A DNA stretch of 64,000 nt, from contig CM007989.1 in assembly GCA_002189035.1 (NCBI GenBank), positions 7,254,001 through 7,318,000 of the forward strand, given 5' to 3'. Source of the DNA: Utricularia gibba (taxonomy: Eukaryota; Plantae; Magnoliophyta). A program made the translations under genes and the position numbers. Below the pieces are notes generated by a model. That model was not told the origin of the DNA, did no database searches, and saw nothing but the letters and a program-made list of their open reading frames with translations. Numbering within the stretch: position 1 is the first letter of the stretch; every line of letters begins with the position of its first letter. Shown piece after piece: positions 46,414 through 64,000 of this stretch.

Positions 46414-47357
46414 TTAGCATCGGAGATTGGTTCCGGGATCCACTCCCAACTGCCTGCAGTACTTCAGGTAGTTGTTCACCCTCACCGTCACTGCGTTGCT
46501 GTTCCCGCCGTTGCACTCACCGCCGTTGATCGCCCTGATCGTGGAACCGAAGCCCCGGCCGGAGGTTATGCGAGCATGGCAGTTCCCCATCCAGAACCAA
46601 AGGGCAGCCTTCCACGCAACCACGTTGTCTTGGGCGACTCTTTCGGGATTGCCGAGTCCGTTGAATCCGATGCTCCGACCTGCCGCGCCGTAGTTGTAGT
46701 TCCATGTCAGCTGAAGCGGGCCGCGACCGTAGTAGCGTTTGCCGGCGACGCATGGCCACTGCTTGTTGGTGGCGTCGCAGTATCTCCGTGTTGCCCCCAC
46801 GATCTCCTCTACGTAGCACAGAGCTGCAATGCATGGAATTAACACTATTGACCAAGATGATCAATCTATTTTACCATCTTTGTTGATGTGTGTTTGGAAT
46901 AAGACTTACAGCCAGTTTCACGAGTGACATGAGCGAAGAAGGCTGCAATCTCGCGCTTGGCATCGGCGACTGACCCCGTTGCCCCGAAAGCAGGGTAGGA
47001 GCTCGCAGCATTCAGAAAAGAAGCCCTGGTGTAGAATCTCCGGCCCGCGCAGGACGTCGAGGCCCGACTTAGGATGCTATTGAAGAACGCATCAGTCACA
47101 CTATCCGAGACACGAACGCTGACCGATGATGCCTGGTGGAAGGATAATAAAGGCGTTGAAATTTAGGATTGGATGAATGGAAGGATTATATGTTATATAA
47201 GTACGCAATAAACGCAAACTTCAATTCTTAACACCTCTAGAGATGATGAAGAGGTTGACGACTCCTCATTGCAGGGACCGGCTCCGCAGCTATTCTCGCC
47301 GGAAACCACCGCGAGCATGAACAAGAGAGACGACAGCAATAGCACAGACTTGCCCAT
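46414..47357 (-). CDS. Class IV-type chitinase B with the hevein domain almost fully deleted and an extra hinge intron
   Basis: Exons 47357-47235 ([41 protein letters not shown]), 47132-46910 (..[11 protein letters not shown]) and 46823-46414 ([30 protein letters not shown]). Confidence 0.88.
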
Positions 47358-48190
47358 TGATGCAGAAGGATTCCTTAAAACTTGCACACAAGTGATTCTT
47401 CAGCACAAGGCCAACTAAAGTAGTTGTATGTCCGAAACCAAGTGCATTAGACAAAGAAAGAAACTCAACTCAGTAGCTGAAGTAGATGAAGACCCAACTG
47501 TTATTGCTCAAATTCCTTCCAATTGCGAAAAACCGCCGCCGCTCCACCATGTCTCCCTTTTTGACCTAAGTCTCCAAAATGGGCTACATGGCAGCATTTG
47601 GGCCGCTTACTTGGAATGGGTCATAAGCCCATTAATCACAACCCAATCACCTATTCTGTTGGCAATGAACCCCTTCCTGGATATTGCATTCTATTTATAG
47701 GACGAAAGTGGTTAAATACGACATTCCCATTAAAATAACCTTGAAAATCCAAGTTGGTTTACTTTCCAAATTGAAATATTTTTTGATAAAATAGAAGCTA
47801 AAATTATCAACTTATTAAAAATAATAAGTACTTTTAAAATTCTATACAAAATATGATCTTAACTTTTTATTTCTATTATTAGAAAAAAAGGCTAAAAACG
47901 GGAAATGCACGTGTGTTTCTTTAATTTGGTAAGTCAAATGTGTCCACAAATGTAGATAAAATGTACACGTTTTTAAGACGTTTCCAGAAAGAAACGGGTC
48001 TTTCTCATTTACGTTTTCTGATAAAAGTATAAACAAGTTTACTTATTTTCAGAAAACTTACCTTATTTCAAGAAATGCAACATTTCCGAAAATGAATAAA
48101 GATGCTCTTAGTATTGACATAGAAAAGGAATCTAATCCTCTTGATCCTAATACTCCATTGAATTCCATCTCTTGAACTAGCTTTGATAGC

Positions 48191-48343
48191 AATTTGTTGT
48201 GCAGTGTCAGGATCACTGGAAATCACCACACGCGTGAACCCAACAGAGAACGCCATCAAACCACCTCCAAATGTCTTGGACATCCTTCCCAGCACCCGAT
48301 GCGCTGCCGCGTCAGCCAATACCAACGCGGAACCCAGAACCGG
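48191..48343 (-). pseudogene. Isolated cytochrome P450 CYP78A gene fragment (51 codons)
   Basis: PVLGSALVLADAAAHRVLGRMSKTFGGGLMAFSVGFTRVVISSDPDTAQQI matches the N-terminal CYP78A signature (P-V-L-G...H-R-x-L...LMAFSVGFTRxxISSxPxTAxxI). No flanking P450 sequence. Confidence 0.75.
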
Positions 48344-48599
48344 AATTGAAGTTTGAAAATTTCAACATATTTTACACTGCATGAATGAAAATGAAGAAGG
48401 GAGTAGACAATTTGCAAACTGCTGACTTTCATTCATCTAAATGTCTCAACTTTTCAGACATACAAACCATATATTTATTCAAGCAATTATCATATTACTA
48501 AAACATGAAATGACATAATGCTTAATGTTCTTCAGCCAAAAAAGCTTCCTCCACTCAGTAGTAGTGTTCTTCACTTTAACCATCACCAAGCTTTTCAGA

Positions 48600-50944
48600 T
48601 CATCCTCTAATAGATGGGGCTTTCTAAGTGCAGTGGAGACAAAAGAATAAGCAGCAAAGACTTTTTTGAATCAAAGCGAAATTGAAATGGGAATTTTTAA
48701 TACCTTAGGTGGTGGTGGTGGTGGAGATTTCTGATAATAGAGACCAGGAAACCATAATAAGAGAGGATTAGAAAAGATTAGTACATATTTTGGTATGAAA
48801 AGTGTGTGATACTTTATTAGATAACATAGAAATAAATTAAAATTATTAATGGACTTCTAATAATGGAGATCAAAGGCCAATAAAAAAGAGAGGATTAGCC
48901 AAGAGTAATTCACATTATGGAAAGGAAAGTGCACTTATTTTTAGAGTATGGTAGACATAAATATAAGAATTATTAATACCTTTTGTGGAGATGACTTCTA
49001 ACAATGAGAAGAAAATACCCCCAAGAAGAGAAGATTAGCAAAGACTTGTCCATGTTTTGGATTGAAATAAAATTTAGATTATATTTCTTGATACCTTTGG
49101 CGGTGGTGGTGACTTTTGATAGCATGCAAATAAGATGAAATATAGAAAGAATTAGTAAATACTTCAAATTACACCCTCAATTTGGATGGAGAGTATGCTT
49201 TTTTTTTTTTGAATAAATGAAAAAATATAAGTTGAAATTTTTAATACCTTTGGTGAAGGTGACTTCTAAGAGTAGAAGCAAATACCCAAAAAGAAAAGAT
49301 TAGCAAATATATGTCTATGTTTTGGATTGAAAGTAAATTTAGAATAACATACATTTAGTGTTGGTATTGTCTTTCGATAACATACAAATAAGATCACAAA
49401 TACAGAAGATTAGTAAAAAGTTCAAATAACATCCATATTTTTAAATAAATGAAAAATATAAATTGAAATTTTTAATACCTTAGGGGGTGATGGCCGCTGT
49501 GAATCCTAAAAATGAGTATAAAACACCAAATGAAGAGGGAATTTGCTTTCAAAATGTAGATTGTATCATATTTCATAATATGAAACAAGATTTAGATGAA
49601 AATTTCATAATACCTTTTTTGTTAAAGATGGTGGCCTTGGTGGAGGTGACTTCCAAAAATAGAAAACAAGTACCCCAAGAATAGAAACATCAGCAAATAT
49701 TTGTCCATGTTTTGGATTGAATGCAAATTTAGAATGCATTTCTTGATACCTTTAGTATTGGTGTCGACTATTGATAACATGCAAATAAGATCACAAATAC
49801 AGTAGATTAACAAACAATTCAAATAACACCCATATTTTTGAATAAATGAAAAAATATAAATTGAAATTTTTAATACCTTAGGGGGTGATGGCCGCAGTGA
49901 AACCTAAAAATGAGCATAAAACACCATATGAAGAGGGGATTAACGGATATTTATTCAGATTTTAGTATGGAAAGTGCATGATATTTCACAATATGAAATA
50001 AGAATACCTTTTTAGGTGATGGTGGTGGTCGGGGTGAATGCGACTTCTAATAATAGGAAGAAAATACTCCAAGAAGAGAAGATTAGTACAGATTTATCAA
50101 TGTTTTGGATTGAAAAGAAATTTAAATTGAATTTCTTGATACCTTTGGCCGTGGTGGTGACTTTTGATAGCATGCAAATAAGATGAAAAATAGAAAGAAT
50201 TAGTAAATACTTCAAATCTCACCATATTTTGGATGGAGATTATGTATTTTTTGAATAAATGAAAAAATATAAGTTGAAATTTTTAGTACCTTTAGTGGAG
50301 GCGACTTCTATTGATAGCAAGCAATACCCCAAGAAGAGAAGATTAGCGAAGACTTGTCCATGTTTTGGATTGAAAGAAAATTTAGATTGCATTTTTTGAT
50401 ACCTTTGGTGGTGGTGGAGACTTTTGATAACACGCAAACAAGTTCACAAAATAAAGAAAGAATTAGTATAGACTTCAAATGCGGAATATTCTATATTTTT
50501 GAATAAATGAAAAAATATAAATTGAAATTTCTAATACCTTTGGCGGTGATGGCCGTGGCGAACCCTAAAAATGAGCATGAAACACCACATGAAGAGAGGA
50601 TTATTTTATATTTATTTAGATTTTATGGAAAGTGAACGATATTTTAGTACCTTTTCCGATGGCGGTGGCGGTCGTGGTGATGACTTCTAACATGAGAAAT
50701 CGAATATGTCGAACAAATGGATATCAATATTTTGAAATTAAGGAAACGAAAACCGCACCTCCAGAGATGATGAAGACGACTTCCGGTAGCAGGGACCGGC
50801 TTGGCAGCCATCACCGCAGTAGTCGTTTCCGGCGCCGCATTCGCCCCACTTGCAGCACAAGTCCGGCGGACAGTCGCAGTCCTGGCCGGAAACCACCGCG
50901 AGCATGAACAAGAGAGACGACAGCAATAGCACGGACTTGCCCAT
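48600..50944 (-). CDS. Secreted hevein-extensin chimera encoded by 17 exons, 15 of them micro-exons (predicted 190 aa)
   Basis: Exon 1 50944-50759 (signal peptide + hevein + SSSSSLE), 15 phase-0 micro-exons of 18-39 nt bounded by AG and GT, terminal exon 48623-48600 (KAPSIRG*), AATAAA at 48479-48474. No stop codon in the spliced frame. Structure inferred from sequence only. Confidence 0.78.
48704..50686 (-). repeat. Degenerate tandem array of exon+intron units (about 105-155 bp) with higher-order periodicity
   Basis: Recurrent plus-strand motifs (a/g)taccttt..ggtggtg..gactt(c/t)t, catgttttggattgaaa and gaataaatgaaaaaatataa.ttgaaattt across about 16 units. Confidence 0.92.
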
Positions 50945-52256
50945 TCTATTGGTAATGAATGAGCCCCTCCCTCGATATTGCATTATATTTATTGGACGAA
51001 AGAGAGCTTTCCATTAAAATAATCTTGAGAATCTAAAACTATGTTTGTACACAGTAGATGTATAGAAAAAAATGTTCAAATTAATTTTATTATGAAATAC
51101 GATCGAATTTTATTTTAAAAATACCAGAATTTTAAAATCATTTATTATTTTTAATAAACTAACTTCTATTTTATTAGAAATATTTATCGAAATATTTTTT
51201 GATAATTAGAAACTAGACTCTTTAGTTTAGTTTGACATTTTCTTAATATATTATTTGGTATGTCAAAGGTGTCTGGTTAATGCAGATCAAATGAGCAAGT
51301 ACAATAATACAAAGTTGTCCAATCTCCTTATGCATAAGGCTGTTCACCCATTATGCATTTTTAATTTTAATTAAAATTTAAATAAATATTCTCAAAAAAT
51401 TACAAGAATTAATAATCATCGACCAAATTTAACAAAAGGAAGAAGAGAAACCCTTTGTAAATTAGACATTAACTTCCCTAACACACACAAAAAAAAGCAG
51501 ATGCAGACGCCATTAAGGTGACAGTATACTGACAAGGAAAATACATTATTAGATTAGGCAGCGGAAATTGTTAAGTCAAGGTTTTTATCCATTGCACCAT
51601 TTAGAGGAGTGGACATGGTGTGTTAGAAAAATGATTATTTTTATTGTTAAATTTTGTGTAAGAAAAGAGAAATGATGCATGATGAATTTTGTTAAAGATG
51701 CTTTATTCATTACATAGATTTTTTTTTTGCGTGGTGTTGAAATTGAGGATTATATAAATCGAACACATGTGAAGTATTGGTGGTTTTAAAATAATGAATT
51801 CAATTGAGGTTAGATCATTCAGCCCAAACTCGTAACTAAATCGAAATCATTTCAAATGCATGAGAGCTGAAATTAATATTTTGACGGATTGAGCAAGTAC
51901 ATGTAAAATTCAAGTATATAATAAATGTAAATTATGTTAAAAATTATATCTAATTAATTACTAATGACTTGCAATTTATGTTATTAGTTTACATTTATGA
52001 ACATTTTTACCAAAAATTCATTTGTTTTAATCCCAAATAATTAATTATAAATCATTTATCAAACGATGGATCACAAATAAAATAAATAATTATTTTACAA
52101 TATAATAATTGTAACCCCTCTAACGAAAAGGTGTTATTCGTGACCCATTTGAATTGCTTTCCGGGGTCATGCAAAGCAGAAAGCAAGAGGATGCAAAGAC
52201 TAACTTATTGAAAGCAGGAGGATGACACGACGGAGGAACGAGCAAATACCATTTGC

Positions 52257-53501: not shown

Positions 53502-53789
53502 ATGAGTTCTTTTTTAAATTACAGTTTGTATACAGAGTAGATTTCTACAGGGCCTTATGTATTAAAAGTTTGAATTGAATAAGATATATATATATTATTA
53601 AAACATAAGCATAAAAATTTAGATGAATTCGGTATTTTAAAGGATCGTTTGCACAAAAAATTTACATTTCAATTAAAATTTTAAAAAATGCAAAGAAATA
53701 TATATATTTGTTCTTTTAAAAATTTTAATAGAAGTAAGATAAAACAGGAACCAAATTTTAAAGTTAGGGTATTTACCCTATTTTTTCCC

Positions 53790-53900
53790 ACAGTTGCTCC
53801 ACTTGGTGCAACAAGACCCGCACCACAGCCGCAGTTCTGTGCGTAAGCCACCAGGAGAGTTGATAAGAATGAAGACAAGATCACTAGAGAAAATGCCCAT
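53790..53900 (-). pseudogene. Chitinase E relic: promoter + signal peptide + partial hevein domain
   Basis: Homologous to the chitinase G 5' end ([27 protein letters not shown]) but with a frameshift right after ATG GGC ATT and a second shift in the hevein part; truncated, with no catalytic exon. Confidence 0.8.
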
Positions 53901-54599
53901 TTTTCCTGGTGCGGAGATCCTGCGTGCGCGCGATATTTATAGCGCAAAAGTCAAAACACAAATACTATTAGATTGACTGTTTTCGTGCACTGCTTAGTCC
54001 TATTCGGACAATAAAAAAGGGAAGATTAATGTTCGGATTCGATGCTAAGACAGCGGAGGTAATTGCGTTTATTTAACGAGAAATGGTCATGTGATGGCTT
54101 TGTGCATGCATTTGTTTTTGAAATTCAGGATTTTATGAGTCAAATAAGTATATATAAAGATTAAATACATAAAAAACGTGAATCATATTTAAAAAGATTA
54201 AATCCAAAAAAGTACTAATTATCTATAATTTTTTATATACGTGATTATTTTATTTTCAAATATTGATATTGAATTGTTTGTTTTAATATTTGATAAATTT
54301 GTATTACTTTTTTTTATAAATTTTTGTTTCTAAACATTACTAAATAATTGTAAACCATTTAACGAACGTACGATCAAGAACAAAACATTATTTCATAGTT
54401 TATATAAAATGATAATTTAAATTCTGATCTGCCTAACAAAGGATTTGTCAGGCGTTATTGGTATTAAGGAAACACGTTTGCATGGCTTTTCGGGGCCATG
54501 CAAAGCATAAAAGCAAGTAGAGTGGACACCATGGCTAACTTATTGAAAGCAGGAGGATGACACGACGGAGGAACGAGGAAATATCGTGCAAGCGTCTGT

Positions 54600-55894
54600 C
54601 TAGCAACGCTGGTTCGTCCCCGGATCGACTCCGAACTGGTTGCAGTAGTTCAGGTAGTTGTTCACCCTCGATGTCACCGCCGCGGAATTGCCGCCGTTGC
54701 ATTCCATGCCGTTGATCGCCCTAATCGTTGCGCCGAACCCTTGCCCGGAGATTATAAGATTGTGGCAGTTCCCCATCCAGAACCAGAACGCGGTTTTCCA
54801 TGCAACCTGGTTGTCCTGGGCGACTCGTTCGGGATTATTGAGTCCGTTGAAGCCGATGCTCTGACCCGCCGGGCCGTAGTTGTAGTTCCAGGAAATCTGA
54901 AGCGGGCCGCGGCCGTAGTACCCTTTCCCGGGGACGCACGGCCACTGCGTGTTGGAAGCGTCACAGTAGTTTCTTGTTGCCCCGTTGATCTCCTCTATGT
55001 AGCATAGAGCTGCAAATTTCAAAATTCAGTCCTGCATTTTGCTAATCTTCAAAACCCTAGCTAGAGAGGCGACACTCACACCCAGTTTCGTGAGTGACAT
55101 GAGCGAAGAAGGCAGCGATCTCGCGCTTCTTATCGGCGACAGTCCCTGTAGTGCCGAAGGCAGGGTATGCAGTAGCAGCAAGAAGGAAGGATGCCCTGGT
55201 GTAAAATCCACGGCCTGGGCACCCGCTCCCTGCCTGGTTTACAATGCTATTGAAGAACGCATCAGTCACAATATCCCCAACACCACCGCCGCCGGACGGC
55301 GGCGTGTTGTAGCAGGGACCGGCTTGGCAGCCGTCACCGCAATAATCTGCTCCCGTGCCACAGTATCCCCACTTGCTGCAGCACTGGCCCGAAGGACAGT
55401 TGCAGCTCTGTCACAAAAACAACAAATCGTATGAGACAAGAGACTTATTATCAGGTACTTATGATGCAGGATCTGCAAATAAAAATTTAGATTAGATTTC
55501 TGAATACCGCCGATGGTGGCGGCGGCGAGCTATAGCAGGGGCCGGATTTGCAGCCATCTCCACAATAGTCTTGCCCAGTGCCACAGTAGCCCCACTTGCT
55601 GCAGCACATTCCCGAAGGACAGTTGCAGCTCTGTCAAGAAAACCACAAATCGCATCAGACGAGAGACTCACCATCTGGAAATAAAATTTAGATTAGATTT
55701 CTGAATACCGTCGACGGTGGCGGCGGCGAGCTATAGCAGGGGCCGCCTTTGCAGCCGTCACCGCAATAATCTGCTCCCGTGCCACAGTATCCCCACTTGC
55801 TGCAGCACAGGTTCGCACTACAGCCGCAGTTCTGCGCGTACGCCACTAGAAGAATGGATAAGAATGAAGACAGGATCATCAGAAACTTTCCCAT
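54600..55894 (-). CDS. Chitinase G: class IV chitinase with three tandem hevein domains
   Basis: Exons 55894-55709 (signal peptide + hevein 1 + SSPPPPST), 55630-55508 (hevein 2 + SSPPPPSA), 55407-55080 (hevein 3 + GH19 N-terminal part to HETG), 55009-54600. The first two introns are phase 0 with canonical GT/AG. Confidence 0.9.
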
Positions 55895-55933
55895 GTTTGC
55901 TGGTCTGGAAATACTACCTCGTAAGTGCACGAT

Positions 55934-59738: not shown

Positions 59739-61196
59739 GACTTCGCGACTATTCGTTCCACATGACTCATGTGATTCAATAAACAGAAATTTAGTGTATT
59801 AAACATATAACCTAACGTTTGAAAATCAGAATCAATTAATCTTTCTAACATATATAAAATTCTATTTTACGAAAATTAAACAACAAATTATTTCTATTAG
59901 AATATGTAAATTTTTTATTAGAAAAGATTTTCGATAATTATTTTTAAAATTAAAATTACAGTTATATCAGTTTTATAAATAATTTAATTATCTTAATTCT
60001 TAAATTATTTCTAATGTAAATATATTTTAGTAAATAATAATTTAAATTATAATTAAAAATTAAATAATATTTTTATAATATAAATATATACAAAATATTT
60101 TTAAATTATAAATTTTTAAATTAAAATTATTAATAAATATGGATAAATATGTTATTAAGTTATTAAAATCAATTATTAATTTTTATATTACAAACATAAA
60201 TTATTTTATATATTGTATCATTTTATGAAAATTTTCAATTATGTAAAATCAATTTTGAAGTGATTTTTTGAAATGTAACTATAATATCATACAATAGAAT
60301 AATAAATCATAACAAAGAATCAAATTGGGAATTAATTATTTTTAAATAGGAACATTCCTATATTATTTCTTAAATACTTAATTAAAATTATTTTGTATGA
60401 AATAATTTAAAATATAATGTACACTAAAAAATTGACCAATTTCAATATAATTTTTTCATCGAGATAAAATTTATAAATGACCTCACAAATATGTTTCAAT
60501 TTATCATAGTTTTTAAATTAAAAAAACCAATGACTAATAATACTATTATTAAGACACGTGTTGTAACGCGGCACTGGTCAAGTTTTTGCCTTTTCTTAGG
60601 GCCCATATTTTCATATTTTTTTTCTAATACTTTAAGAATTTTAATAATTATATTATACCAAACTTCTTGGGGCATTTGTTCTCTTGTGTCTTGCTAAAGG
60701 AAAAAAAGGTACGCAAATGTGAGTATTTTTTAAAATATTTTACTATGGAAAATAAAAATAAGAAAAAAAGAAACGCAATAGAAACTCTATTTTAATATTT
60801 AAATGTTTTTGTTCATTTAATTTTTGAATAATTACATGTCGAATGTATAAATATATTTAATTATTTAATTAATAGGAATAAATGAATGTATATTCAATGA
60901 TTTATATAATTATATGAATAAATATTATTAAATTTTTGTAGGTATTTCTATTGTGAAAAATTTTAAAAATATATTCTTGAATGGAAAAAAAACGTTTTTT
61001 GTTGCATTGAAAAAAGAATGGAAAAAATAAATTTTCTTTGTGGTCAAATGGATAAAGGAGGTGAGGTTGAATGTTTGACCTGAAAAGTCGTAGGGCGGCG
61101 TGTACGAACTGCATTTGGCCACAGTGATCTTCTGCAATCCAATTCGCTAAATTCAAGAGCTGATCTCGCGTTTGCTCACCAGTGCGCCGGCGAATC

Positions 61197-64000
61197 ATGA
61201 TCGACTATGAGCGTAAACCGATCGAGCTGCGGGCTACTGAGGCCTTGGGCCAGGGATTTGATCTTGCGAGCGATTTCAAGCTCGATTACGTTAAGAGATG
61301 CCCTATCGGAACGCGGTTAGTTGTTCTGGACAAGACGAAGAACAGAGATGTGATTGTGCCTGGAGTGGGAACTATCAAGGATGTGCCTGAATGCATTCGT
61401 ATTGACAAGGGAGATCATACTCGGTTTAGTTCCGATATCCTCCTGTTCAACCAGGTATTCTTGATTTTTTTTCTTGTTTTTCCTGGTTTTTGGGAGCATT
61501 GCATAATTGTGATATTTGGCTATCCTATTCGTGGGTACAATTTTTGTTTTCTGGGAGAATATTGGTCTTAATTATTGGGGTTGATATGAATAATTGATTA
61601 GATTCAGAAAAAACTCATACTATATGTGTAAAAGGTGGTTTTTTAGCGCAATTTTCTGGGAGAAAAAAATCTTGTGACGTAACAAGTTCATTATTAGGAA
61701 CTAAACTTACTGTTGTACCCTGGCATCATGGTTTGCAAATTGAGAATTTATGCATAATCTAAAATGAAAGCAGGCGAATGACACATTCTTCACTCTTTCC
61801 GTATTTTGCTATCGCTGCTGGTTGCCTCCTTACCTATTTGACCGCATGTATTCATATCTGCATCAAGTAGAGAATGATCATAAGAGTTGAACTAATGAAA
61901 GGTTCAATTTTCAGATGTCAGAGTTGATTAATCAAAGATCATCAGTGCAAGGGAAAGTTCCATCCGGGTACCTTAATACCGTTTTTGATTTAAGTGGCTT
62001 TTGGTTGAAGGATGCTGAAGAGGCGAAGTATTTAGCATTCGACGGCTCTTTTGTTTCACTTTATTATCTGCACTTGACCACTTCACCTGTGGTGCTTAGT
62101 GACCATGTAAAGAAGGCGGTGCCTCGCCTATGGGATCCTGCTTCACTTTCCAGGTAATCTGTTCCACCTTGTTCTTACTGTCATTACAGCATGTCAATGT
62201 GACATTTTTAGGTTTTTAAATATTTTGCTCGGTGCCCTGAGATTGGGATGCTCTGATTACTTTCACTTTTGTACTATTTTAGGTGTTTCATGTAATCTAT
62301 CTGCTGAGTGATAATTGCAAACTCTGATTTATTTCTTATCAATTGAACCTCTTTTTTCATGATATTAACCCAGATTCATCAAGACTTTTGGAACACACAT
62401 AGTAACGGGAATGGCAATTGGAGGACATCATTTAATTTGTGCTAAACAGAGATCTTCTTCTCCAATCTCACCTGCTGAACTTAAGGGATATCTGGAGGAA
62501 GTTGGCGATCGCTTGTTTTCTGATGCTGCTAGTCACATATTCGATAGTACAGCCAAATACAATGATAAAAGAGTAGGGCTTTTGTTACATCTTATTGCTA
62601 ACTGTATGAATAATTTAAACTGCTGTCGTGATCATACTCCATTCTTTTTGCAGCTTCCGAATGTACTTAGTGATGTTCTTCAGCCACGCCACTCGGAGTT
62701 AATCAGCAAGACAGTAAGTTATCCTTATGATCTATTTTGGAAGATGAGGTGTTTTCTCGGATTTATTAGTGTACTTTTGACTGTAATAAGATGAGGTCTT
62801 GTAAGGCGTCCCCTGTTGATACATGTGCAACTTTGCAGGGTCTTACGGTTTTTTGTTCAAAGAGAGGAGGTGATGTTTTTGCACAAAATCACTCCAGTTG
62901 GCTGCAGTCGGTGCCAGCCAATCCAGAGGCTATACTTTTTAAGTTTGTTCCAATAACCTCTCTTCTAAACGGGATTCCAGGAAGTGGGTTCCTTAGCCAT
63001 GCGATTAATCTCTATCTCAGATGTGGGTTTCTACTTTCTGCCTCGTAAGCTCTCCCACTTTTTTCTGTTGTACAATTATATATAATCAATCCTTTTTGCG
63101 GACTTTCTTCAGATAAACCATCATTGGAGGATTTGCCCTACTTCCTAGAATTCCAAGTTCCTCTACAGTGGGCTCCTTTATTTTGCGAGTTGCCTCTAAG
63201 ACATCAGAGAAGGAAAACTGCAGTTCCTCATTTGCAGTTTCGCTTCCTAGCTCCTAAAATTTTTGTCAGTCTTTCCCAGGTGTGTGCTCGGATTTCAACC
63301 CTGTTGTGGGGATAGTTTTTGAAGTTTCATACGTATTGGCACATTCTGCATGGTCACCATTTGGAAAAGCCTGTATTCACGTGATTGATCCTCATTTCTT
63401 GGATTGATTGTGTTTTCCTTGTCTAAATTTATCATCATGATGTAGGTCAGCAGCGATGCGAAACCGGTCACTGGTTTGCGTCTGTTTCTTGAAGGAAAGA
63501 GAAGCAATCGCCTGGCAATACACGTCCAGCATCTGTCGAATCTACCACATATCATGACTTCTTCCAAATCAACAATACAACCCAGATGGCGAGGCTCTAA
63601 TGATTACGAGTCACACAACCAGTTCCTGGAACCAGTGGGTTGGAAGAGATACGCAAATGTTTGCGCTTCTGTCGTCCAGCATGATCCTCAATGGCTGCAA
63701 GAATCATCTGCATCTCCTGGTGTTTTCATAGTAACTGGTGCCCAACTAGTCATCCAGGGAAGATGGCCGACCAAGGTTCTTCACCTCCGTTTGTGTTTTA
63801 CCCACATTCCAGACTGCAGCATCCGGAAGACAGAATGGGCATCTACCCCTGAAGCCTCTGGAAAATCAAGCTTCTTCACAAATCTAAGCACCACTTTCAC
63901 ATTCTCCCAGAGAGGAGCACCCGCAGCCGGTGACAATAAGAAGCAACCCAAGACCCTCAACTCTGGGGTGTTTCCAGACGGCCCACCAGTCCCTGTTCGG
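61197..64000 (+). CDS. MACPF domain-containing protein (NSL1/CAD1 family, At1g14780-like); 3' end runs off the right edge
   Basis: EALGQGFDLASDFKL, KGDHTRFSSDILLFNQMSELINQ, FIKTFGTHIVTGMAIGG, FKFVPITSLLNGIPGSGFLSHAINLYLR, FLEFQVP, NSGVFPDGPPVPV. Splice chain intact. Confidence 0.9.

Follow-up and report, generated by a model that had tools for sequence, protein, structure and literature searches.

On the minus strand of a 64,000-nucleotide stretch of Utricularia gibba DNA (the window), between positions 50944 and 48600, a run of 15 micro-exons follows an exon for a signal peptide and a hevein-type domain. With moderate confidence, we regard it as a real, weakly expressed, lineage-specific gene, which grew by cassette amplification out of the 5' portion of a class IV chitinase gene within a tandem cluster. 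On this reading, exon 1 would carry the chitinase signal peptide, the hevein-type domain and the start of the hinge, and the hinge end would have been amplified, along with the hinge intron, as exon-plus-intron cassettes of three types, with the outcome of 15 phase-0 micro-exons between short, AT-rich and U-rich introns. The plant spliceosome would remove the array introns by intron definition, and the product would be a putatively secreted protein of 190 aa, in which a disulfide-knotted acidic head is joined to a polycationic tail of 128 aa.

Architecture and transcripts of the gene

The 17 exons that an earlier sequence-only reading had proposed were all re-derived from the window at the same coordinates, with the AG and GT flanks and the phase 0 claimed there (Table 1). 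The AAG|GT end of 14 of the 15 micro-exons, the intron lengths of 72-249 nt and the AATAAA after the terminal exon were likewise seen. The micro-exons, of 18, 27, 36 or 39 nt, lie between an upstream AG and a downstream GT; every one is in phase 0, has a length divisible by three and is free of stops. The donor of exon 1 is GAG|GT. The spliced coding sequence of 573 nt forms an open frame of 190 aa, and retention would bring an in-frame stop for 15 of the 16 introns. Exon 1 has a GC content of 61%, the micro-exons 52% and the introns 26% (with 44% T); the introns also contain CTAAT branch-point-like motifs. The GT donor of the terminal exon is mutated (GGTATTA to GGATGA), so that translation runs into TGA, and the longest intron (249 nt) owes its length to the dead type-A unit inside it. 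The reading had also held that an ORF finder cannot see the gene; this applies to the micro-exons, but exon 1 is present in the ORF listing, as an ORF of 81 aa and as the only part of the gene.

Table 1. Features of the micro-exon gene, in order of transcription (positions are those of the window)
Feature	Position	Strand	Type	Length (nt)	Peptide or motif	Basis and remarks
TATA-like element	50982..50993	-			AATAAATATAAT	~40-50 nt upstream of ATG; read in sequence
Exon 1	50759..50944	-		186	signal peptide (~20 aa), 8-Cys hevein-type domain, Ser-rich hinge start SSSSSLE	donor RNA-confirmed
Micro-exon 2	50651..50686	-	A	36	KSSPRPPPPSEK	both junctions in RNA contigs
Micro-exon 3	50538..50564	-	B	27	GSPRPSPPK	acceptor RNA-confirmed; donor backed by 9-nt exon-4 overhang
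Micro-exon 4	50403..50420	-	C	18	SPPPPK	first 9 nt (TCTCCACCA) after exon 3 in RNA contigs
Micro-exon 5	50290..50307	-	A	18	KSPPLK	sequence
Micro-exon 6	50143..50160	-	C	18	SPPRPK	sequence, alignment
Micro-exon 7	50008..50046	-	A	39	KSHSPRPPPSPKK	sequence
Micro-exon 8	49877..49903	-	B	27	VSLRPSPPK	sequence, alignment
Micro-exon 9	49750..49767	-	C	18	STPILK	sequence, alignment; some prolines lost
Micro-exon 10	49614..49649	-	A	36	SPPPRPPSLTKK	tandem acceptor without upstream AG; AAG acceptor predicted
Micro-exon 11	49479..49505	-	B	27	DSQRPSPPK	sequence, alignment
Micro-exon 12	49353..49370	-	C	18	TIPTLN	sole micro-exon ending AAT|GT
Micro-exon 13	49248..49265	-	A	18	KSPSPK	sequence
Micro-exon 14	49095..49112	-	C	18	SPPPPK	homologous, with intron start, to chitinase hinge end/intron
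Micro-exon 15	48980..48997	-	A	18	KSSPQK	sequence
Dead unit remnant	48851..48858	-	A		acceptor TAG + AAGTCC	alignment; no coding part, no donor; inside 249-nt intron
Micro-exon 16	48704..48730	-	A	27	KSPPPPPPK	sequence
Terminal coding exon (predicted)	48600..48623	-	A		KAPSIRG + TGA stop	sequence, alignment
Candidate polyadenylation signal	48474..48479	-			AATAAA	~120 nt past stop; sequence

The micro-exon pattern is not a product of chance. When both strands of the whole 64-kb window were scanned for Pro-rich segments with AG in front, a length of 3n and GT behind, 11 of the 15 micro-exons were recovered at the coordinates of the reading, within ~2 kb, and two more were recovered with a more internal acceptor; the remainder of the window gave 10 scattered matches of 12-27 nt. 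The same scan of 19 unrelated hevein loci found no micro-exon cluster.

Exons 1 to 3 are spliced together in RNA of the same organism. Two contigs of ~106 nt (depth ~3, both from run X11) join 50792..50759 to 50686..50650 and to 50563..50538, followed by TCTCCACCA, the start of exon 4. Introns 1 and 2 are thereby exactly confirmed, the segments spliced out have GT..AG ends, and the overhang into exon 4 is 9 nt. At the TAGAAG acceptor of exon 2, the upstream AG is used. The second contig represents a variant that has 3 nt more in exon 2 and an exon 3 starting with GAG rather than GGT, with identical splice sites; as for variation in exon use, these two short contigs have the same junctions. The claim of a spliced transcript across the array is thus borne out for the exon 1/2/3 joins and 9 nt of exon 4, where the contigs end, and the inclusion of exons 5-17 is inferred. 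In four RNA runs, no contig of the gene lies anywhere between exon 5 and the 3' end. Other candidates for further transcripts were rejected: an RNA piece of run X19 at 48710-48729 belongs to an unrelated extensin transcript; an abundant 795-nt contig with matches in exons 4 and 16, considered as an isoform, is an unrelated classical extensin transcript; and contigs that share just 50885-50945, considered as alternative splicing of exon 1, come from the downstream chitinase, which has a near-identical signal peptide.

Derivation from a chitinase and amplification of cassettes

Tandem-expanded chitinase clusters have been reported for Utricularia gibba, and the window holds at least seven copies of class IV (EP3-type) GH19 chitinases. 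By homology to these neighbours, the micro-exon gene is shown to have arisen by partial duplication of a class IV chitinase, in line with the chitinase derivation supposed in the sequence-only reading. The signal-peptide region is identical at 60 of 61 nt to that of the adjacent GH19 gene, a stretch that RNA contigs share with both genes, and the ~110 nt of proximal promoter have a homologous counterpart at 47650-47745, in front of the next chitinase gene. Within the array, 49064-49109 matches the end of the hinge and its intron in a neighbouring triple-hevein chitinase, at 55678-55723 (blastn, 85% over 46 nt, E 3.6e-8). The description of the gene as catalytically empty also agrees with the data: when 48560-50760 was compared by blastn with the rest of the window, which includes those GH19 genes, only hinge and intron matches were returned and no GH19, and the spliced product leaves no room for such a domain.

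A repeat search and MAFFT alignments reveal that the array consists of exon-plus-intron units of three types in the order ABC/AC/ABC/ABC/AC/A/(dead A)/A. Tandem Repeats Finder reported no repeat in the array, because the units carry indels and a higher-order structure. In the alignments of the B and C cassettes the splice-site columns are invariant (8/8). All cassettes are symmetric, so that gain, loss or skipping of an exon would alter the length of the tail and leave the frame intact. The 3n lengths could come in part from triplet (CCA)n slippage rather than from selection.

It is possible, though rather unlikely, that the locus is a young relic without selected function, in which the hinge and intron repeats expanded neutrally by unequal crossing-over and the product is irrelevant or unstable. 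The chitinase duplicate would have retained the promoter, the signal peptide and the signals for splicing, and the array would still be spliced because the copied splice sites are intact. Such a relic would account for the equal variability of exon and intron columns (33% and 32% variable, respectively) and for the ratio of 0.89 between pN (0.22) and pS (0.25) among paralogous micro-exons, the flanking introns having p 0.12. Neither the dN/dS test nor the column-variability test on the paralogous micro-exons gave a signal of selection; the copies diverge at least as fast as the introns. Prolines have gone from two C-type exons (STPILK and TIPTLN), one cassette is dead, the chitin-binding site is degraded, expression is very low with the 3' part lacking a contig, and no relatives were found with exon 1 as the query. 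On the other hand, 15 of 15 cassettes retain a usable AG, a usable GT and the frame despite pairwise differences of 12-25%, the dead cassette has been absorbed cleanly into an intron with the frame unbroken, and the indel that sets the second expressed variant apart is of 3 nt and in frame. The hevein exon, compared with five paralogous hevein domains, has pN/pS of 0.25-0.55 and keeps all eight cysteines.

The search for relatives used exon 1 as the query. With phmmer, 1.84 billion representatives gave only chitinases and lectins of at most 69% identity, none with a Pro-rich tail. A word-indexed search with exon 1 alone gave no candidate, a profile to which an unrelated ORF was appended, so as to admit a wider range of lengths, gave no scoring match, an uninformative outcome, and a profile with a paralog as its first row gave EP3-type chitinases only, with no protein of the source genome. 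Exact look-ups of the exon-1 ORFs returned no record, and the 19 distant hevein loci that came out of a metagenome scan all lack a micro-exon array. A relative of the same architecture was thus absent from the databases searched in this way.

The predicted protein

The head is acidic (pI 4.2). Its eight cysteines have the canonical spacing, with conserved glycines, and are all in register with the domains of WGA; it also aligns with the five paralogous hevein domains of the window, which upholds the earlier assignment of a signal peptide and hevein-type exon. The term lectin fares less well. The score against PF00187 (CBM18) is 21.3 bits (E 3.3e-4), below the Pfam gathering score of 27.8. The residues that bind chitin in such domains are Ser19, the aromatic residues 21 and 23, and Tyr30 (PMC5478723). 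The corresponding motif of the head is CC-KWGECG...DYC, in which Trp and Tyr are retained, the Ser is missing through a deletion, and the second aromatic residue has given way to Glu. The loss of two of the four canonical residues is the sole such case among the six hevein domains in the window.

The tail contains 39% Pro and 18% Lys, has a net charge of +29 and lacks Tyr. A content of at least 45% P+V+K+C+Y+T defines the PRP class, and the tail passes this rule with ~61% (P 39%, K 18%, T 3%, V 0.8%). Four SP3+ motifs (SPPPP twice, SPPP and SPPPPPP) are spread sparsely over its 128 aa. The earlier name of an extensin-like tail is apt for these motifs, but the lack of Tyr means that the cross-link motifs of classical extensin (YXY, VYK) are missing; judged by its composition, the tail is a polycationic Pro/Ser/Lys segment of HRGP/PRP type, not a classical extensin. 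A classical extensin (SPPPPPYVYKSPPPP) is expressed in the same organism from another genomic locus.

For the gene product, secretion, glycosylation and any role in binding or defence are inferred. The tail would probably be hydroxylated and arabinosylated at the four SP3+ motifs and probably assume an extended polyproline-II rod, which would bind ionically to acidic polymers of the wall or surface and so probably display the head outside the cell. A more speculative extension, which we hold to be unlikely, is that exon skipping and NAGNAG acceptors allow combinatorial use of the 15 symmetric micro-exons and so give a secreted family of polycationic, Hyp-glycosylated proteins with a hevein-type head and a tail of variable length, serving in plant-surface defence or maybe in bladderwort traps.

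It appears improbable that the gene encodes the precursor of a released hevein-like peptide, in which the 8-Cys head would be cut off to act as an antimicrobial or signalling peptide and the tail would be a pro-domain or a remnant of the hinge. The order of signal peptide, 8-Cys domain and C-terminal part fits the three-domain precursors known for such peptides (PMC5478723), and a basic YRK stands directly after the last Cys; yet the amplified tail of 128 aa far exceeds the remnants of 16-34 aa in known 8C peptides, and the residues that confer antifungal activity on these peptides are partly lost. It is highly improbable that the array serves, in some transcripts or in an ancestral state, as the very long hinge of a full chitinase, with the terminal exon skipped and the exon-16 donor (48704) spliced to a GH19 exon of the downstream gene that starts at ~47134. 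Both junctions are in phase 0 and would join in frame, the two genes are complementary halves in that most of the hevein domain is gone from the downstream one and the GH19 domain from the micro-exon gene, and proline-rich long-hinge chitinases exist in sugar beet, but RNA contigs of ~1 kb from four runs give the downstream GH19 gene a 5'UTR, an ATG and a signal peptide of its own, the two genes are separated by a P450 gene fragment and a copy of the promoter, the required intron of ~1.57 kb compares with 72-249 nt elsewhere in the gene, and no loose RNA end is found at 48704.

Comparison with known systems

Hevein-HRGP chimeras and micro-exon genes are each already known. In the literature and protein databases searched, we found neither an HRGP-like tail in which each repeat is its own phase-0 micro-exon nor a run of 15 exons from an amplified chitinase hinge and intron. 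If the full transcript is confirmed, the gene would show that intron-definition splicing in plants copes with long runs of 18-nt exons, would provide a dated, stepwise case of a secreted protein born from a linker and an intron, and would mark a blind spot of annotation, in which ORF- and homology-based finders see exon 1 only. Should the combinatorial reading be true, the product would be the first micro-exon-array HRGP known to us, and the gene would let the birth of a modular secreted protein be watched as it happens. The gene also bears on how tandem-expanded chitinase clusters, as in Utricularia gibba, yield new architectures.

Class IV chitinases share with the gene the signal peptide, the 8-Cys hevein domain, the beginning of the hinge and the site of the first intron. 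They possess a GH19 domain, which the gene lacks; the 128-aa tail takes the place of their hinge, and the chitin-binding motif of the gene is altered. Solanaceous lectins (potato, tomato) combine hevein domains with a glycosylated extensin-like region (PMC8012813). Like the predicted product, they are secreted and pair a Cys-rich module of chitin-binding type with a Ser-Pro-rich, HRGP-like region. Their several hevein domains are interspersed with classical Ser-Hyp4 blocks, in contrast to the single head with a degraded site, the Lys-rich tail with few SP4 motifs and the independent chitinase-hinge origin seen here. To our knowledge, a micro-exon gene structure has not been reported for them. 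The precursors of hevein-like peptides have three domains with C-terminal domains of 13-254 aa, and for the cargo-free 8C precursors, whose remnants are 16-34 aa, an origin from a chitinase hinge was suggested (PMC5478723). The three-part layout with a C-terminal part thought to be hinge-derived is shared, whereas the tail of 128 aa is repetitive and split into micro-exons, and Ser19 is deleted and the second aromatic residue replaced by Glu.

The MEGs of Schistosoma contain 10-20 very short exons, mostly of 3n length, after a signal-peptide exon, with introns of 100-5000 bp; their products are secreted and disordered, and automatic annotation misses them (PMC10526429). The MEG-like architecture that the sequence-only reading recognized stands, in that at least 10 short symmetric exons (here 15, of 18-39 nt, 3n and phase 0) lie behind a signal-peptide exon. 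There is no homology and no common descent with the trematode genes, which belong to another kingdom: a plant chitinase hinge is the source of the gene, its introns are 72-249 nt and its cassettes are recent duplicates of one another. Conserved plant micro-exons are coding, accurately spliced and often absent from annotation (PMC8831610); the run of 15 described here (18-39 nt) is, in contrast, lineage-specific and stems from cassette amplification. A further likeness is offered by the fibrillar collagen genes, in which a repetitive, extended polypeptide is also encoded by many short, amplified phase-0 exons. The collagen exons are 54 or 45 nt long and begin with complete Gly codons; they are found in animals, encode another repeat chemistry and form a far older and larger family.

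Exon architecture and cassettes of the micro-exon gene

The predicted model of the micro-exon gene comprises exon 1, 15 internal micro-exons (exons 2-16) and terminal exon 17, all of which were re-derived from the window (Table). Exon 1 starts with ATG and ends in GAG|GT, and the terminal exon reaches TGA. The micro-exons are 18, 27, 36 or 39 nt in length, each a stop-free multiple of three, with AG before and GT after all 15 and an AAG|GT end in 14. The introns measure 72-249 nt, and the predicted CDS after splicing is 573 nt, corresponding to 190 aa. The exon coordinates and lengths, the flanking dinucleotides, the intron range, the 190-aa product and the AATAAA had been claimed by an earlier, sequence-only reading and were reproduced in full. 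The ORF listing of the locus contains exon 1 alone, as an 81-aa ORF; ORF finders therefore overlook the gene, as was also claimed. A pattern scan (AG, then a Pro/Ser/Lys-rich open frame of 3n nt, then GT) recovered 11 of the 15 micro-exons within ~2 kb at the positions that the sequence-only reading had assigned to them, and two further ones with the acceptor set further in. The remainder of the window gave 10 scattered matches of 12-27 nt, and the same scan found no micro-exon cluster in 19 unrelated hevein loci. The micro-exon pattern is not a product of chance. The earlier observation is confirmed, and its interpretation as a chitinase-derived lectin-HRGP with MEG-like architecture is partly supported.

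The micro-exons sort into three types of cassette, i.e. duplicated units of exon and intron. The acceptor of type A is TAGAAGTC. In type B, TTTTTAG precedes a ..RPSPPK exon, and in type C an SPPPPK exon comes after ATCAAAAG. The order is ABC, AC, ABC, ABC, AC, A, dead A, A, with the terminal exon last; exons and introns were duplicated jointly, with higher-order periods of ~260 and 395 nt. Within the 249-nt intron sits the dead A unit, which has kept its acceptor and lost its coding part and donor. An A unit with a mutated GT donor forms the terminal exon, and translation therefore enters the stop.

GC content is 26% in the introns (44% T), 52% in the micro-exons and 61% in exon 1. The donor consensus is AAG|GTAT(T/C)A, and the acceptors are preceded by U-rich tracts; in many cases CTAAT is present 30-40 nt ahead of the acceptor. 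AT- and U-rich introns with such donors and acceptors are a requirement for efficient intron-definition splicing in dicots. Retention would bring an in-frame stop for 15 of the 16 introns. We also note a low-GC region (0.28) with positive GC skew elsewhere in the window, similar in composition to the array, and an 18-nt exact match to the array at 60117-60134.

Table. Positions of the features in the window
Feature	Position	Strand	Remark
Exon 1	50944-50759	minus	186 nt
Terminal exon	48623-48600	minus	
AATAAA	48479-48474		
Dead A unit	48851-48858		
C exon end and beginning of its intron	49064-49109		
Chitinase gene cluster	44.3-59.6 kb	minus	class IV (EP3-type) GH19
Downstream GH19 gene	ATG 47357, stop 46414	minus	
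Promoter homologue	47650-47745		upstream of the downstream GH19 gene
Cytochrome P450 fragment	48068-48345	minus	N-terminus, 5'-truncated
Probable frameshifted hevein exon	53681-53947	minus	
Triple-hevein chitinase	54600-55903	minus	class IV
First hevein exon end and hinge intron	55678-55723		in the triple-hevein chitinase
Low-GC region	60001-62000		
18-nt exact match	60117-60134		identical to 48833-48850

Transcription and splicing

Four public RNA runs of the same organism were compared with 48300-51100. Two contigs of the micro-exon gene, only 106 and 109 nt long and at depth ~3, come from run X11. In both, the segments 50792..50759, 50686..50650 and 50563..50538 are spliced together in this order. 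The two gaps, 72 and 86 nt long, begin with GT and end with AG at the predicted sites, and introns 1 and 2 are therefore exactly confirmed. After exon 3, both contigs read TCTCCACCA, the start of exon 4, which is distinct from the starts of all other C-type exons; intron 3 is supported through this 9-nt overhang. At the exon 2 acceptor, TAGAAG, the upstream AG is used in the RNA contigs. The second contig (record 3, mapping to 50538-50792) has 3 additional nt in exon 2 and an exon 3 that begins with GAG instead of GGT, with splice positions unchanged and the frame kept. Because the window has just one array, this contig stems from another allele or from a paralog at a second locus. Both transcription of the gene and splicing at its first micro-exons are shown. 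The contigs bear out the model as far as the first 9 nt of exon 4. In none of the four runs does a contig of the gene cover any part of exon 5 to the 3' end, where the model is a prediction.

Two groups of contigs were rejected. Those matching 50885-50945 only, present in all four runs, belong to the downstream chitinase and continue into the sequence of 47268-47297; the signal-peptide region of that gene is identical to the micro-exon gene at 60 of 61 nt over this stretch. An abundant 795-nt contig touching exons 4 and 16 is a classical extensin transcript of another locus, reading SPPPPPYVYKSPPPP. This Tyr-containing extensin is expressed at a depth of ~65 (run X19, record 9) and cross-matches the Pro codon runs in the two exons.

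Predicted protein and constraint

Residues 1-20 of the predicted protein look like a signal peptide common to secreted chitinases, and are followed by an 8-Cys hevein-type head, encoded by exon 1, and a tail of 128 aa. All cysteines of the head are in register with wheat-germ agglutinin domains, and the head also aligns with the window's other five hevein domains. Its Pfam score of 21.3 bits is below the gathering score of 27.8, and it alone among the six domains reads CC-KWGECG where the others have CCS(K/R)WGYCG. Ser is deleted and the second aromatic is replaced by Glu; these are two of the four chitin-binding residues named in PMC5478723. The earlier claim of a hevein lectin domain holds for the eight cysteines, but is weakened by the score and the two lost residues. 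Comparison of the head with its paralogs gave pN/pS of 0.25-0.55 at pS of 0.45-0.69, which indicates that the head has not been free to drift for long, although these ratios do not distinguish between the branches.

The tail contains 39% Pro, 19.5% Ser, 18% Lys and 6% Arg, with a net charge of +29, a pI of 12 (4.2 for the head) and four SP3+ motifs. Its composition and SP3+ repeats therefore place it under both a loose extensin rule and a PRP-type composition rule. The claimed extensin likeness stands for these motifs, but not for the Tyr cross-linking motifs typical of classical extensins, as Tyr is absent. A full 17-exon mRNA would encode a protein that is secreted and carries its Cys-knot head on an extended tail. 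This tail would be polycationic, is probably Hyp-arabinosylated, and would attach through ionic contacts to acidic polymers of the wall or surface, and the symmetric cassettes would make its length changeable via duplication, loss or skipping.

The gene could also be a young relic without function, carrying a neutral array. Such a relic is consistent with pS of 0.25 and pN of 0.22 (ratio 0.89) among paralogous micro-exons, with similar proportions of variable columns in exons and introns (33% vs 32% with wider flanks, Fisher p 0.86), with the loss of most prolines in two C exons, and with 3n lengths that could in part reflect triplet slippage in CCA runs. The 40-nt intron flanks on each side of the micro-exons differ by only 0.12. 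Internal comparisons between cassettes say little on selection. Usable AG, GT and frame are kept in 15 of 15 cassettes despite a pairwise copy difference of 12-25%, the sole dead cassette is absorbed into an intron, and the indel of the second expressed variant is in frame; these points argue against a relic, which we regard as unlikely. Splice-site columns are invariant (8 of 8) in the alignments of B and C cassettes. Splicing and frame are read as constrained, and the constraint on the tail as at most compositional. That the gene is the precursor of a released hevein-like peptide is distinctly more doubtful; known cargo-free precursors of this kind have short remnants, thought to be derived from a chitinase hinge (PMC5478723).

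Origin from a chitinase cluster and comparison with known systems

The micro-exon gene lies within a cluster of chitinase genes. Lamiales chitinases (68-75% identity) are the closest database relatives of one paralog, and the tandem duplicates of Utricularia gibba show an enrichment of chitinases (PMC6982007). The genes are compact, the database has no annotated self-hit, and the locus is present in a 2016 'plant metagenome' run, with DNA runs dating from 2013; taken together, these points make a bladderwort a plausible source. The gene that follows downstream has an intact GH19 domain, the same signal peptide as the micro-exon gene, a hevein domain reduced to a remnant, and a Ser-rich hinge ending SSSSLE|GT, as in exon 1. 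The ~110-nt proximal promoter of the micro-exon gene has a homologue upstream of this gene, separated from the present ATG by an insertion of ~290 nt. In the homologue, part of the upstream region 47360-47745 on the minus strand, the former ATG is now ATAGG. The insert supplies at least 155 nt of the 5'UTR in RNA contigs, and the gene itself has lost ~66 nt of the hevein core. A long-hinge chitinase formed by read-through splicing to 47134, which would be in frame, is highly improbable since the downstream gene has its own transcription, the P450 fragment and the promoter copy lie between the two genes, and the join has no RNA support in the four runs.

The end of a C exon and the beginning of its intron are homologous (85% over 46 nt, E 3.6e-8, blastn) to the part of the neighbouring triple-hevein chitinase where the first hevein exon ends (..SPPPPST) and passes into the hinge intron. 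Another blastn match follows the second hevein exon of that chitinase. The end of a chitinase hinge, together with the hinge intron, was therefore the material from which the array arose. This homology, the near-identical signal peptide and the promoter homology uphold the proposed chitinase derivation.

Other units of the locus were also observed. Hevein domains 1 and 3 of the triple-hevein chitinase differ by pS 0.05 and pN 0.13 (pN/pS ~2.5 over 31 codons), which suggests recent exon duplication or conversion and subsequent amino-acid divergence. At 53681-53947 a signal-peptide exon continues into QNCGCGAGL.. before the hevein frame is lost (..VAPSGATVGKNRV); it probably comes from another chitinase-derived unit. 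The P450 copy (..PVLGSALVLADAAAHRVLG..LMAFSVGFTRVVISSDPDTAQQI) is a recent fragment that separates the micro-exon gene from the next chitinase. Its expressed parent gene must lie outside the window, because abundant RNA contigs, at depths of up to 110, follow 48300-48345 but depart from it at 48345 to read AIPGPSGF.., a sequence that the window does not contain.

Schistosome MEGs consist of a signal-peptide exon and 10-20 symmetric micro-exons (PMC10526429). The micro-exon gene as predicted has this layout, in agreement with the MEG-like architecture claimed for it, although the two are unrelated and MEG introns are long. The micro-exons known from plants occur singly, are ancient and belong to conserved genes (PMC8831610). 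Hevein-extensin chimeras are known from Solanaceae (PMC8012813); they possess several hevein domains along with Ser-Hyp4 blocks of the classical type, in contrast to the one hevein-type head observed here. No report or database protein combining these features was found, with exon 1 as the protein query and a database without the annotation of this genome.
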